A stretch of 64,000 nt of DNA, taken from NCBI GenBank assembly GCA_905178155.1, contig CAJINV010000002.1, positions 1,091,809 to 1,155,808 on the forward strand, in the 5' to 3' direction. Source of the stretch: Amoebophrya sp. A120. Its lineage: Eukaryota > Protista > Dinoflagellata. Under the pieces are notes generated by a model. The model was not told the DNA's origin, did not search any database, and saw nothing but the letters and a program-made list of their open reading frames with translations. A program made the position numbers and the translations under genes. Of the stretch, positions 33,271 through 39,639 are shown in pieces; positions within the stretch are counted from its first letter, which is position 1; each line of letters starts with the position of its first letter.

Positions 33271-36200
33271 TCATTCCACCAACTGATACGCTTTCAAAAA
33301 CCCCCGGGTCTGTTCAGCACTGCAGTTTTGGAACCTGGTCCCGCAATTCCCGCACACCGCCTGCATTTCGCAGTACACAGACAAGCACCCAGATATGAAC
33401 TGCAAAAGCATCGCACTCGTATAAATGCATTACAAATTTCCTCAGCATCAGAAAGAAAATTTGTAATGCGTATGTAATTTAAAAAAAAGAAGATTTGTAA
33501 TGCATGATTGCAATACGAGCACGATACTTTTGCACAGGATACCAGAGCAGACCATGCCACTGTTCACTAACTTGCGGTGACATGCGCAAACCGTCGCCAG
33601 GTTGCACATGGTATTGGCCGAATTGCTAGTAGACGAAGACGAGGTTGATGTCATGCCGCTTGTTCTCATCATGCTCAACAACACGCTCGCCGGCTCGAGC
33701 GGTTTCAGAAAAAGTTCCGCTTTCGGGCTCGGCTGCAGGAAAAGGGTGTACAGCGCCGCGGTGGCGTGAATATCCTCGACTTTGTATCAAGTGTAATAAG
33801 TGTCTGACTCTGGAAGAATGCGCGATTTGTCATGCAGCAATTCCATGACCCGTGAGGTCTGGAATGCAAGACCTAGCATGACAGATTCTGTGCGATCTCT
33901 CTCATGCCTATCCTGCATCAGAAACTCCCTCCCGACTTGGTCAAAACTGGACGACTTTTGGTGATCACGCAACACAGATTTTTGCATGCTTCAGATTTAG
34001 CATGACAAGTTGCATTCTTCTAGACCCAGACATATTTGCATTTGATACTTTGTCGATCTCCACGATTTTCCCGTTCGCCTTCTCTATCACACAGAAAAAA
34101 GCTGGCAGGGCATATTTGTAATGCAAAAATAAATAGACAGAAAAACTTGTATTGCATATCCTAAATAGCATGCTATGAGGCCGCCCATGGCACATTTTTC
34201 TGTGTATTTATTTTTGCATTACAAATATGCCCTGCCAGCTTTTTTCTGTGGGATATTCTCGACGCCCTGCTGAAGCAGAACGGAGCGCTTGCAGGTCGTG
34301 GAGATGTTGCGAACATCATCAACCGCATGCTGATCTTCAGACGGAAGAAGTGCGGATCTTGTTGTCTCGTTCGTGCCATTTCTGTTTGTTCCACCCATAG
34401 CACGAGCTGCATCAGAAGTTGCGGTTCCTGCCTCACTGCAAGACGCCGGAAACCGCAGTAAATCCACTCTGACCTTCTGTTGGATCGCGGACAGAAACGT
34501 GCGGAACAGCGCGTCATAGAAGGCCGCTATCAAACAAAAAAGCGCTAACGGTTTTCTTTTCACGGATTGGAAATATGCATTACAAATCTTGCCTAGCATG
34601 CATGCTGTGCATAACAAATTTCGGAACGTTTTGTGATGCGTTACTGCATCACAAATTCCGTTAACGTCAACACTTTTTCCTATGATAGCCGCGTATTGGG
34701 TTTCACTCACCGAGCCGTCGATGATGATGATCCTGCCGCGAAGCGTCTGCTGAACTTGGGAAATATCGACAGTTGCTGAAGTAACAGCAGTCGCTGCGCT
34801 ACCAGAGCCTGTATTCATTTCGCTGTCGTGGTTTACGATTCCTCCCCCGGAAGACGTAGTTCCTGCGAGCCCCATCTGTGCGGTCGCGCTGGCGGTGATC
34901 AGCTCCTCGGCGTTTTGGAAGATGGTGACTTGGTTACTTCTTCGTGAAGCTGTTGAGCCGCTGGCGTGACCACCAGAGGGACTGTCTTCGTCCTCGCTGC
35001 CGAGGAAGAATTCCTCCTCCTCTTCTTCAAGCTCCAGCCTGTTCTTCTGTTTCAAAAGCTCCTCTACCTGTGGATTGTAGCTACCCAGAGCTGCTGTTTT
35101 TGCACCACCGGCTGCTGTCCTTTTGCTGCTGTTCTTCTTATTTTTATTTTTTCCCTCGAAAATATTAGAATTTGAAGACGTCGCCTTGGCATTCGCTATT
35201 CGCGTGTCGCCACTGGAAAACTTCGCGAGTAGGCACAGGGCCTTTGCGAGGACAGCCGGCATGAGGGAGTCGCGTTCCTCTTCGAACCAATCGGAAAAAA
35301 TTTTTTGAGCAGCTGCGCCGGGGTCGCGATCTAGCCTTACCGTGGGGGCCTCAGGTCTATTTGTACTTCTACTTGCGGCTGCTGCTGGTGAAGTAGTGCT
35401 AGTCCCCGAGGCGCGAACAACCTGCTGTGCCTTGACGACTCTTTTCTGCCACACTTGCAAGGCCATCAGAATGTTCCGGATTAGCCGCTGCCAATGCGCA
35501 TCAAACTCCGAAACTGGGACCGGAGGCAGCAACATGAGCTCACCCAGCTCCTGCACTTGCTCGTGAGGGGATCTCATCGCTTTGGGGTTTTTGAAATTCT
35601 ATGCATCGCAAAAGTTGTACAATCGTACTAGTAGTCTACTTGCATTCTCCTGATTTATTTTTCCGAAGGAACTCCTGCTAGAACTTGTCATGCGGATTCA
35701 GGCAGGAAAGCTACCACACTTGTCATGTGAAATTGGAGCTGCATTCTACGTAATATTACGAGTTGTACGACATTAGTTTTCCTCAGGATACATTCGCGTT
35801 GTAGGGGAGAGCGGTGTTCAGCTCGGCAAGGAGATGATGGCAGTCCTGCTTCGCAGCACGAGCAGGAGCACCCGTCTGAGAAGAGCTACCGCTAGCAGAA
35901 CTTGCGGAATGAATGAACTCTTTGTCCTCTTCGAAACGAGAGGAACTTCCTGCTCCAACATCCCGGCCTGTCCTGATTGTGCCCAACACGGCGACGTAGT
36001 TGCCAGCTCCTCCACTAGAAAACGCCAGCTTCACCAGCTTAGCGAGTTCCGGAATGAGCAGTCCGATGTCGGCCTCGTAAAACCAGAAACACGGATTCAG
36101 GTCCAAGACCAGCACGATCAGTTCCGAGGGCGGATGACTCGGCGGCGCGGCCAGGAGCAGGGGCTTCAGCGGCTGAAACTTGCTCTTGCTCGTCTTGGTG

Positions 36201-39200
36201 GGATTCGTTGCTATCATACTCGTCCCAGCCGGAGGCCGAAGAAGTGCATCTTCCGCCGGCGGCGAAATCATCCTCGCGCTGTCTACTAAATTGTGGCCCA
36301 ACATGCAACCCGCGGGACAGAGGTTCAAATACAGCTGACTCTGGATGCTGCAGGTGTTGCAGAAGTGCGAGTTGCACACGGGACACTCGACTTTCGCGTA
36401 GTCCTGTTGACACATCGCGCAGCAGGGCAAAAACTTTTGACGACGTAGTCTGGATGTTGAGCTGGATGATGGTGCACCAGGAGAGGTGGAAGGCCCTATT
36501 TTTCGAACATTTGAACTACTGTTCGTACTGCCGATGGCGGGCGGGAACGCGGCCGGTGGCTGCATTAGTTTCCGTGCTTTATTTGGGAGAGCAGCAGCAG
36601 CGGAGGTGCCTTGTTCGGCCTGACGATGACCTGCGTCCTGGAGGCTGCTCGAGCCATCTGTTTTGAAGTTGTCGGTTAGCCGCACAAAGGGCAGCATTTT
36701 CTGCTCCGATCGGCCGTAGTATAGGTGGCGAGCAGCAACTCCTGTAGAGGACGATGTACTTGCAAATGCATGTTCTTGTGCCCCCACCTCCGACTCCGAG
36801 CCGCCCCCGGCCCCGCTACTGCACCGACTCTCCACCAAGCTGGTCCCATCCACCAGGTAGATGCCACAGGTGAAGCACTTTGCCGGCAGGGAAATGGTAA
36901 AATCCAAGCAGTTATGCATTGCAAAAGTATCGCACATGTACTAATTGCAACTATGCATGACAAATCTTGTCCTTAAGGGAAAACAGCATGACAAGTCCAG
37001 TTCTCATGTTGCTGAGGTGGAAATTTGTAATGCATCTATACGAGTACGATACTTTTCCTTTTGCAGTTCATAGCAGTCCGGGCACTGGTACAGGTATGGA
37101 TCATCGTGATCCGTGGAATCTTCTACTAGGGCTTCGTGTTCCTCCTCCCCACTACCCAGCCGGTACGATTTCCCAAACAGTCGCTCGTACAGCGCCGGGT
37201 CGCCGATTGTCGTTTTTCCTTATGCATTGCAAAAGTATCCTCGTCGTATAAAAAATGCATGACAAATTTCCTCAGCATGAGAAAGAAAATTTGTAATGCG
37301 GATGTACCTTAATAGCAAGATTTGTAATGCATGAATGCGATTAGTACGAGTACGATACCTTTGCACCGCATATTCCCAGTCGCTCTTTGAAAACTTCGCT
37401 GCGACGGATGATCAACCTGGGGAAGCCCATACGGACCAGGTGGTGTTTCGTCGTTGTGGTTGTCGCGCTGTTGCTGACATCCCCGCCCTCGTGCTGCCCT
37501 TTCGTCGGCGCACTAGAATTTTCCAAGTGCGCGAACAGACATTCTTTGAATTTGTCAGCGTTGACCGCAATTTTGTAACTACTACTCAGTTCCTTCAGAA
37601 TGCGCAGCTCCGGGGAGATACTGACCACGTGGAGCTCAATTTTCTTATCCTGTGCAAAAGTATCGCACTCGTATTGCAGTCATGAATTGCAAATTTTTTT
37701 CTCAAGGTAAATCCGCATTACAAATTTTATTTCTCATGATGCTGAGGAAATTTGTCATGCATTTATACGAGTACGATACTTTTCCTTTTGCAATGCATAT
37801 TTCTCCTTCTGCATCAATTGCCTGCAGTAAAACTCGATTTGCTTGTGATTTTTGTCGAAAGTCGCGAGATTCGCCGTGCACAGAATAACCTCCCGTCGCC
37901 CATAGGCCGGACACTGCTTCAACTGCTGCTCGGCCAATTCGATGCAAGCTTGTAAGGAGAACTTCCCCGCGTGCGGACTTGTCGTTGCAACATTTGTAGA
38001 AGTTCTTGAGGCTGCTCCTGCGATAGGGTTTGCCAAAGAGGAAGTAGTTGTACTAGCGACCCCGCCGCCCGTCCTCGACAGGTGCGCCGACTTTCGTTCC
38101 AAGATGCGCACCAACTGATCCCGCTTGGCTGAGGAAATAGGGGAGGGAGAGGAAGAGCCTACAGTTGCGGCGGAAGAAAAGCTGCTGCTTGGTGGATTTA
38201 TTGCTGTCGCCCCGTACGAAGATGCAGATGCTCCGCGAGAAGTTCTCATGCTGCTGTTCCCCGAAATCGGCACCGCCACCTCACAGCCCCCGTTCATCGC
38301 GAGAGACACGCCGAGCATCGAGATTGGGTTTTTCTTGTGGAAAAACGAGACAAAATCCACCACCGTTGTGGCCATGCCCTCCCGGTTGGACGGTTTCCAC
38401 ACCGAGTGAATTTCCGACGTGTCAATTTCCTTGGACCAATCCAAGATGACCATCACGTAGCGAAGTAAAGACGCGGAGGGCGGCGGGGGCTTCTTGATGA
38501 TCCGGCTCGTACTCCGAGGTGGAAGTTCATCACTCCCTTGCCTTCTCGTCCCATCCTCGGCACCAAGGGTTGTGGCTGTCGTGGAAGGAAATCCTGTTGT
38601 TCCTCCGCCTCTGTAGAGCAAAAGTCGTTCGCGCTGCGCTTTTTCCTCAGCTTGCTGTTCCCTTAGTACCGCAGTGCTCCCACCAGTGTCTACCAGATTT
38701 CCGGTTTCCGAATCGACCTCCAGTCGGTCCCATTTCCGCAACTTCGCCCGGTTTTTGATTTTTTCAATTCGCTCGTCGTTGAAGCTGCGCGCATTCGCGT
38801 TGTCTTGGTCGACGTCCGTGTACTGTCGGAAGTCGGAGGAAGCAGACGAAGCTCCAGGAGCCGCGGCGTGATGTGCGGGTTTGATATATCAACTGTAAAA
38901 ATGTCTGGGTTTGGAACATTCTGACACTTGTCATGCACATTTTGCATGAGCCCTGATGTCTGTGATGCATGCCCTAGCATCACAGATTTTTTCAGAGCTT
39001 CTTGATGCCTATTCCGCATGACAAATGCCCTCTCCGCGTAGCAAAAATTACATTCCTTTTGGTACTCATGCAATACAGATTTTTCTGGAATCCAAATGCA
39101 GCATGACAAGTTGCATTCTTCCAGACCCAGACATTTTTACGTTTGATATGATATTTCCTCCTGCAATCGGGTTGAAGGACGAGGACGAGGAGGACGAGGG

Positions 39201-39639
39201 ACCGCCACGGCCTATCCTGAGTAAAAACGTCCCCACCCCAGAGTCAAGATGGGGACTTTGCAACACAAACCCAGAAGTTTTGGGAGTCACGCATGACAAA
39301 TTGTAGTCCCTAGTGTAGTGCAGGGTAGCAGGGAGAGCCGCAATACAAATCCAGCTGCTCATCCTGTTTACAGCATTACAAATGCCAAAACACGATTGAA
39401 AATGCTCCTCATGGAGATGCGCATTACAAATGTTCCTGTCGTCGCACACTTGCATGACAACTCTGGGGTGTTTTATGTACTGGAAAAGACCAAAATTAAA
39501 GCACAGAGAAGTTTGGGGTGGGGACGTTTTTGCTGAGGATACGGCCGGCTCCAGAAGTGCCAAAGACATTGGTGCGCGCGTTGCTGTTGCCGTTATTCTG
39601 GTTCGCGGCCCGGGCTGTTGATGACGTGAAAGCGTTCAT
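33271..39639 (-). CDS. GTF2H2-GTF2H3: TFIIH p44 (Ssl1/GTF2H2) - p34 (Tfb4/GTF2H3) fusion protein, 11 exons
   Basis: After removing 10 elements: p44 vWA (LLRYVMVILDWS, NPISMLGV, GKFSLQACIELA, GRREVIL, LVRMGFP), C4 finger (YQCPDC..LPAKCFTCGIYLV) and C-terminal zinc domain (CPVCNSHFCNTC..LNLCPAGC). With no stop it continues into p34 vWA (SELIVLVLDLNPCFW, GRIIII, TQYAAFYDALF, LLQQGVEKANG) and the p34 finger (CACHRKLVNSGMVCSGCLSVYC..CGNCGTRF). Confidence 0.9.
33394..33541. mobile_element. Introner, family A
   Basis: DR ccaga/ccaga; restores p34 finger VCSG|CLSVYC. Confidence 0.95.
33785..34047. mobile_element. Introner, family B (reverse orientation)
   Basis: DR ctttg/ctttg; frame restored. Confidence 0.92.
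34085..34255. mobile_element. Introner, family G (~50-bp TIR CAGAAAAAAGCTGGCAGGGCATATTTGTAATGC)
   Basis: DR ttctc/ttctc; LLQQGVE|KANG. Confidence 0.92.
34528..34687. mobile_element. Introner, family L (3n length, stop-free)
   Basis: DR gccgc/gccgc; removal restores TQYA|AFYDALF. Confidence 0.85.
35600..35790. mobile_element. Introner, family A (diverged)
   Basis: DR aattc/cattc; joins ORFs 35783-36937 and 34219-35577. Confidence 0.85.
36913..37072. mobile_element. Introner, family A (reverse orientation)
   Basis: DR gcagt/gcagt; restores YQCPDC|LDFTISLPAKC. Confidence 0.95.
37221..37372. mobile_element. Introner, family A
   Basis: DR ttcct/ttccc; frame restored. Confidence 0.9.
37646..37799. 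mobile_element. Introner, family A (reverse orientation)
   Basis: DR tttct/tttct; QKEK|IELHVVSISPE. Confidence 0.93.
38887..39148. mobile_element. Introner, family B (reverse orientation)
   Basis: DR tgata/tgata; frame restored. Confidence 0.92.
39213..39541. mobile_element. Introner, family H (TIR AAAAACGTCCCCACCCCA)
   Basis: DR cggcc/cggcc; frame restored. Confidence 0.9.

Follow-up and report, generated by a model that had tools for sequence, protein, structure and literature searches.

A gene fusion of the TFIIH subunits p44/Ssl1 and p34/Tfb4 that is conserved across three Amoebophrya strains

The dinoflagellate Amoebophrya sp. A120 encodes two core subunits of transcription factor IIH (TFIIH), p44/Ssl1 and p34/Tfb4, in a single fused gene. 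The gene lies on the minus strand of the window analyzed here, a stretch of 64,000 nucleotides from contig CAJINV010000002.1 (assembly GCA_905178155.1, positions 1,091,809 to 1,155,808), and has 11 exons, 10 non-canonical introns of the introner type, and 1,442 codons plus a stop codon. The fusion is genuine, is transcribed, and recurs in three Amoebophrya strains, with a continuous open reading frame, continuous RNA contigs, and a recognized family for each half. A natural p44-p34 fusion in one open reading frame had been proposed from an inspection of the letters by themselves (the sequence-only reading), and our analysis bears it out: the Ssl1 and Tfb4 profiles both score above cutoff in three strains, there are PDB matches to both subunits, and RNA contigs run through the join. 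We consider it highly probable that this one A120 gene yields one spliced mRNA with one frame of about 1,442 codons, in which a complete p44/Ssl1 is followed by p34/Tfb4, likely as a single chain.

The join lies within one exon and recurs in three strains

The two subunits meet in exon 6, which is delimited by the public protein model together with an RNA contig whose splicing ends the exon at 35792 and resumes the sequence at 35595. This exon sits in a stop-to-stop open stretch of 385 codons (36940-35786, minus strand) and encodes the remaining half of the p44 C4 finger, an insert of low complexity, the RING-like zinc domain of p44, a linker, and the presumed opening part of the p34 vWA region. 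The sequence-only reading had placed the zinc domain, the linker, and SELIVLVLDLNPCFW in a single stop-free exon, and its positions proved accurate within a few bases. The p34 part begins with LIVLVLDLNPCFW (36121-36083), and 61 residues separate LCPAGC from LIVLV.

When the fusion exon was used as a phmmer query against 1.84 billion representative proteins, only three matches were found, all of them to long proteins in which the match spans the join. One of these, CAD7931981.1 (1,353 amino acids, 99% identity to the exon), is the deposited model of this gene, an "unnamed protein product" of Amoebophrya sp. A120. The other two, CAD7943805.1 from Amoebophrya sp. A25 (1,156 amino acids, 38% identity) and g6409.t1 from Amoebophrya sp. 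AT5.2 (1,056 amino acids, 45% identity), match over the zinc domain, the linker, and the segment that follows. The fusion had been thought hidden from normal gene prediction; this was mistaken, as the deposited A120, A25, and AT5.2 models all contain it, unnamed. Amoebophrya strains average 48 to 51% amino acid identity (PMC7789003), and the join is therefore old. Comparison of the three proteins indicates that selection has maintained it since before these sequenced lineages diverged.

The linker itself is poorly conserved, with lengths of 61, 60, and 51 residues in the three strains and 5 of 37 ungapped columns invariant (14%). The zinc domain reaches 41%, and the p34 start, where V-D-L-N-P-x-F-W is the same in all three orthologues, reaches 34%. 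A frame that stays open over an unconserved linker in three lineages is not a chance outcome. An assembly or annotation artefact that joined two adjacent genes is a general risk in introner-rich genomes, and we found nothing specific in its favor. Against it, the join is internal to a single exon, a DNA contig and an RNA contig reproduce it without a difference, and three independently assembled and annotated genomes contain it, so that this explanation, to which we assign next to no probability, is effectively already refuted.

We also compared the window with assembled contigs, which were mapped over positions 33271-39270. The RNA label of run X1 is a guess, though its contigs are spliced, and run X5 behaves as DNA. 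X1 record 2 covers 35989-36587 with 0 differences and 0 gaps, a range that takes in the whole zinc domain, the linker, and the beginning of the p34 part. On the p44 side, X1 record 3 covers 36581-36906 with 0 differences and carries 146 letters of the upstream exon. On the p34 side, X1 record 1 (1,901 nucleotides) joins 35792-35987 (0 differences), 34688-35595, 34256-34522, a stretch of about 33 unplaced letters that corresponds to the micro-exon, and 33542-33778, splicing exon 6 in frame to exons 7 to 10, with 260 further letters towards the 3' end. RNA depth is alike on the p44 and p34 halves, at about 4 to 9. DNA contig X5 record 11 covers 34652-36967 unspliced, again with 0 differences and 0 gaps. 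Because this contig and X1 record 2 are identical to the window, no stop or frameshift was missed near 36300, a doubt that had accompanied the fusion when it was first proposed. Thus, one mature transcript crosses the join, as seen in assembled contigs rather than single molecules.

The same data bear on whether separate p44 and p34 mRNAs arise from one primary transcript, in the manner of dinoflagellate polycistrons, by internal spliced-leader trans-splicing or by polyadenylation in the linker, with contigs that merge overlapping molecules. Dinoflagellate mRNAs are trans-spliced (PMC7789003), contigs are blind to transcript ends, and the A120 linker has three Met codons (CAD7931981.1 residues 663, 674, and 692). 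We nevertheless regard this as very unlikely, since there is no in-frame stop to finish a p44-only protein, the RNA contig crosses the linker unbranched with similar depth on both sides, and selection has kept the frame open over an unconserved linker in three lineages. In addition, the A25 and AT5.2 linkers contain zero Met, and the next Met stands 90 to 116 residues beyond the first p34 strand (90 to 108 residues when counted into the p34 fold), so that a separate, AUG-started p34 is impossible in these two strains.

Family identity of the two halves

The curated gathering cutoff of the Pfam profiles for Ssl1 (PF04056) and Tfb4 (PF03850) is 27 bits. For Ssl1, the full-length A120, A25, and AT5.2 proteins score 40.9 to 56.5 bits. 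A three-strain profile matches SSL1/GTF2H2 chains in PDB with E values of 7e-22 to 1e-11; the match to Chaetomium p44 (8rev_D, E 7e-22) aligns profile positions 275-565 with chain residues 181-504 and reaches the C-terminal zinc domain. The central C4 finger lies within this 275-565 match and, in a separate search, aligns weakly with 8rev_D residues 348-375; its two halves, CPDC at the end of exon 5 and KCxTCGIYL in exon 6, are invariant in the three strains. The eight Cys of the C-terminal zinc domain are likewise conserved in the three strains, and the best PDB matches of the fusion exon are the C-terminal domains of Chaetomium p44 (5obz_B, 5nus_B, and 8rev_D), with E values of only 0.05 to 0.26. 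In a Pfam search with the fusion exon alone, no family was matched, including Tfb4 and C1_4.

For Tfb4, the full-length proteins score 42.4 (A120), 34.6 (A25), and 35.3 (AT5.2) bits, also above the cutoff. This match is limited to profile positions 201-273 or 240-273, and each of the three proteins has a second, weak Tfb4 stretch at E <= 10. Exon 10 alone gives a weak match to profile positions 200-269 (E 3e-4). The three-strain profile matches human GTF2H3 (28jm_F) at residues 254-303 with an E value of 9e-12 over the C-terminal finger, and the pattern C-x-C-H...V-C-x2-C-L-x-V-x-C...C-x2-C-G-x-R-F of the p34 C-terminal C4 finger is invariant in the three strains. At the level of the family, p34 is thus recognized through roughly its last 70 residues. 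Upstream, in the p34 vWA region, the three strains share the invariant motifs VxDLNPxFW, LPPVP..E..HW, KALC, RGRI..D.S, and YD..F...L.A....VR.D..R. Of the three domains expected by the sequence-only reading, Ssl1 and Tfb4 were therefore found in the public full-length proteins and C1_4 was not.

We also considered that the C-terminal half could be a decaying p34 remnant, in an organism whose p34 function is highly divergent or missing. Such decay would fit the vWA part, which is interrupted by long inserts of low complexity and is matched by no profile when searched alone. However, the frame is open through about 720 codons, 30 to 45% of columns are invariant in conserved blocks along the whole half, including all eight zinc ligands of the C-terminal finger, Tfb4 scores above cutoff, and low-complexity inserts are as frequent in the p44 half. 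Decay of p34 is, in our view, extremely unlikely.

Exon map, introners, and inserts

The exon map (Table 1) combines placement of CAD7931981.1 on the window, an exon-by-exon phase check, and the spliced RNA contigs. All 11 exons are open in the required phase, and the sole split codon, at the boundary of exons 7 and 8, is GCC (Ala), a sense codon and not a stop; the count of ten introns and eleven exons in the sequence-only reading was right. Exon 3 matches Pfam Ssl1 with an E value of 1.6e-11 and is covered by X1 record 5 over 38068-38881, with 47 more letters. Exon 7 is in frame, and its motifs are invariant across the three orthologues.

On the window, CAD7931981.1 occupies ten exons and jumps from 37800 to 37216, omitting exon 4. 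This open segment is supported in three ways: it has a counterpart in the A25 and AT5.2 proteins in the three-protein alignment, it matches Pfam Ssl1 when searched alone (profile positions 128-193, E 9e-4), and it is covered by an RNA contig, X1 record 4, over 37442-37640 with the match ending exactly at 37640. We infer its 3' boundary, at 37374, from the frame and the introner ends. The deposited A120 model is thus probably short by 89 residues, a conserved C-terminal part of the Ssl1 vWA domain.

Table 1. Features of the fused p44-p34 gene (positions in the window)
Feature	Positions	Strand	Evidence or remark
Whole coding region	33271..39639	-	ATG at 39639; stop codon 33273-33271
Exon 1 (MNAFTSS...GAGR)	39541..39639	-	exact match to CAD7931981.1 residues 1-33; outside read-mapping range
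Exon 2 (57 nucleotides)	39150..39206	-	exact match to CAD7931981.1 residues 34-52
Exon 3, N-terminal region of p44 and beginning of Ssl1 vWA	37800..38882	-	CAD7931981.1 residues 53-413
Exon 4, remainder of Ssl1 vWA (IELHVVSISPELRILK...HHLVRMGFP), 267 nucleotides	37374..37640	-	not in public A120 model
Exon 5, ending YQCPDC (first half of p44 C4 zinc finger)	37073..37216	-	CAD7931981.1 residues 414-461; C-P-x-C invariant in three orthologues
Exon 6 (fusion exon), 1,116 bases, 372 codons	35792..36907	-	CAD7931981.1 residues 462-833; RNA and DNA contigs
CCAMC	36424-36410	-	motif scan
CPVC	36385-36374	-	motif scan
FCNTC	36364-36350	-	motif scan
LCPAGC	36322-36305	-	motif scan
p44 C-terminal RING-like zinc domain (CCAMC...CPVC...FCNTC...LCPAGC; eight or nine Cys)	36305..36424	-	PDB matches
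Pro/Ser/Ala-rich linker, 61 residues, 11 Pro	36122..36304	-	length and composition; inside RNA contig X1 record 2
SELIVLVLDLNPCFW (p34 start motif of the sequence-only reading)	36127-36083	-	motif scan
p34 start (LIVLVLDLNPCFW...YVAVLGT), presumed first vWA strands	35792..36121	-	conserved in three orthologues
Exon 7, middle of p34 vWA region (LPPVP..HW, AVLAKALCLLAKFS, RGRIIIIDGS), long low-complexity inserts	34688..35595	-	RNA joins 35792/35595 and 34688/34522
Exon 8 (FYDALFRTFL...VRVDLLR...)	34258..34522	-	RNA contig X1 record 1; CAD7931981.1 residues 1137-1224
Exon 9, 36-nucleotide micro-exon (KANGKIVEIDKV)	34046..34081	-	CAD7931981.1 residues 1225-1236; about 33 unplaced letters in RNA contig X1 record 1
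Exon 10, Tfb4 C-terminal region to first half of zinc finger	33541..33777	-	Pfam Tfb4; RNA contig X1 record 1 over 33542-33778
Exon 11, remaining half of p34 C-terminal zinc finger (CLSVYC...CGNCGTRF), then stop	33271..33387	-	CAD7931981.1 residues 1316-1353

The ten introns (between 33388 and 39540, minus strand) are 154 to 334 nucleotides long, and none is GT-AG as placed. All are of TAT...ATA form, have inverted repeats at their termini, and show a direct repeat of 3 to 6 nucleotides at their ends. Introns 3, 4, 5, and 10 share the terminal motif TGCAAAAG...GTATCG, and introns 2 and 9 share another, ATCAAAYG.AAA.ATGTCTGGGTCT. Introner elements with direct and inverted repeats have been described for this genome (PMC7789003), and the introns of this gene match them. 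The summed contig depth of run X5 was 10^4 to 3x10^5 in introner bins (33271-34270, 36871-37870, and 38871-39270) versus 25 to 45 over exons, and hundreds of contig joints link the introners of this gene to one another. From this depth and these joints, the introners must be extremely abundant and near-identical across the genome. In RNA-seq run X8, 38 reads were found on the gene, all on one introner at 33965-34011 and continuing into unlike sequence.

Low-complexity inserts occur in both halves of the protein. An S/A/G-rich insert of about 120 residues lies between the two p44 zinc modules (within 36425-36850, minus strand), and an E-rich and K/N-rich insert lies in the p34 vWA region of exon 7 (34690-35300, minus strand). 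These inserts are missing or different in A25 and AT5.2 and make up most of the length gap between the proteins, about 1,442 amino acids versus 1,056.

The fused product and its relation to canonical TFIIH

From the domain content, the p44 part of the product would consist of an N-terminal region, a vWA domain, a C4 finger, and a C-terminal RING-like zinc domain, followed by a disordered linker of 61 residues and then by a p34 part with a divergent vWA region and a C-terminal zinc finger. We propose that the product is made as one chain and fills both the p44 and the p34 places in the TFIIH core. The linker would hold together the RING-like domain of p44 and the vWA domain of p34, two domains that bind each other directly in canonical TFIIH. 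Such a tether could fix a 1:1 ratio of the two subunits and raise the local concentration for an interface that has drifted much in a fast-evolving lineage.

A fused gene and mRNA could also give a polyprotein that is cut in the disordered linker, so that mature p44 and p34 are separate and the fusion serves only co-expression and equal dosage. A long, Pro/Ser-rich linker that is unconserved and variable in length would be accessible to a protease; however, its alignment contains no conserved cleavage motif. Fusions of interacting subunits usually remain intact, which we count against cleavage. Assembly would not need it either, as the tethered domains bind each other anyway (PMC5737387). We consider a cut polyprotein improbable and continue to favor the single chain.

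Several observations weigh against the single-chain fusion as proposed here. We infer that one polypeptide is made, that it assembles into TFIIH, and why selection kept the join; indirect support for the first comes from the absence of Met in the A25 and AT5.2 linkers. On the RNA side, the X1 records are assembled contigs from a run guessed to be RNA and do not see transcript ends. Their breaks, at 35988 and at 36581-36587, fall outside the linker, and in no single X1 record are p44 exons that precede exon 6 connected with the p34 exons. The raw RNA-seq runs X8 and X9 (2026, same species label) have almost no reads on the gene and hit only introner repeats; they may come from another strain or consist mostly of host RNA. 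The three Met codons of the A120 linker make an internal start possible in this strain, and the joins in A25 and AT5.2 are known from gene models. On the protein side, the p44 zinc domain gave no Pfam C1_4 match, whether in single exons or in the full-length proteins. When the p34 vWA exons were searched singly, there was no significant match to a Pfam profile or a PDB sequence. The strands and helices that alternate at the conserved p34 motifs come from a low-confidence model: AlphaFold2 gave the AT5.2 orthologue (1,056 amino acids, three-sequence alignment) a predicted local distance difference test (pLDDT) score of 33.6, making the model unusable. The language-model neighbors of the p34 vWA part in AT5.2 and A25 are the Tfb4 and Ssl1 vWA clusters (0.86 to 0.88), which we take as no more than a lead. 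The conserved motifs, the predicted strand-helix pattern, and the language-model leads are weak evidence that this vWA part is homologous to that of p34. Finally, the Tfb4 profile found no match in the A120 genome even at the known locus, and so has no power to speak to a second p34.

Two further points concern the p34 searches. No profile identifies SELIVLVLDLNPCFW alone as p34, and the sequence-only reading, which took it for the p34 start motif, overstated its strength as evidence. The hits to adenosine kinase and designed repeat proteins that phmmer returned for the p34 exons in PDB were rejected as chance matches.

In the A120 assembly, the Ssl1 profile and the AT5.2 protein match only the fused locus, which is the only p44 locus found in this genome. 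Genes for other TFIIH subunits are separate and dispersed: Tfb2/p52 is on contig 8, XPB is about 6.8 Mb from the fused gene on contig 2, and several XPD-like genes lie at other places. We give an even chance to a broader proposal, that Amoebophrya, and perhaps all Syndiniales of marine alveolate group II (MALV-II), has an obligate single-chain p44-p34 as the sole source of both subunits and that the tether let the RING/vWA interface diverge beyond recognition. If true, this would be a natural experiment on which TFIIH core contacts are dispensable and a rare genomic character marking the lineage.

Protein searches, which had low power, found no fusion outside Amoebophrya. The homologue searches (whole alignment, p34 C-terminal finger, and p44 vWA core) gave self-matches or nothing, and one of them missed known orthologues; a scan of Joint Genome Institute (JGI) metagenomes with conserved peptide patterns returned no relatives. 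No described natural p44-p34 fusion was found in the literature searched, and the words "fusion" and "fused" are absent from the Amoebophrya genome paper (PMC7789003). The fusion is already in public models, unnamed and, as far as we have searched, undescribed. Naming it would improve the annotation of three deposited proteins, one of which, the A120 model, lacks a conserved exon. The p44 and p34 subunits are the structural center of core TFIIH; a fusion at the RING-vWA contact would be evolutionary confirmation of that contact in vivo and offers a natural model for single-chain constructs in structural work. It shows remodeling of the basal transcription and repair machinery in dinoflagellates, where this machinery is poorly catalogued, and leaves the known role of TFIIH unchanged.

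A minimal complex of the vWA domain at the p34 N-terminus with the RING domain at the p44 C-terminus has been crystallized (PDB 5NUS, 5O85, and 5OBZ; Radu et al. 2017, PMC5737387), in agreement with the binding on which the sequence-only reading relied. A second, redundant p44-p34 interface uses the p34 C-terminal finger, and this redundancy has been offered as the reason that no disease mutations are known in p44 or p34 (PMC5737387). In its predicted domain set and order, each half of the Amoebophrya protein corresponds to canonical p44/GTF2H2/Ssl1 or p34/GTF2H3/Tfb4, with the p44 C-terminal zinc domain and the p34 vWA region as putative counterparts, and the domains that touch in the canonical crystal complex would be those that are adjacent in the fusion. 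Unlike canonical TFIIH, Amoebophrya has one predicted polypeptide with a linker of 51 to 61 residues, very divergent halves, and long low-complexity inserts. The last pair of zinc ligands is CPAGC in A120, compared to CPGC in canonical p44, and Pfam C1_4 does not recognize the A120 domain. Plasmodium falciparum encodes p44 and p34 separately, in MAL13P1.76 and PF13_0279 (Callebaut et al. 2005, PMC1199594). Plasmodium, from the same superphylum and with the same two TFIIH families, thus has two genes where Amoebophrya has one, and the fusion is therefore not an ancestral alveolate trait. In "Rosetta stone" fusions, proteins that bind each other when separate are fused in one lineage. The Amoebophrya fusion resembles these cases, with the interacting domains placed side by side.

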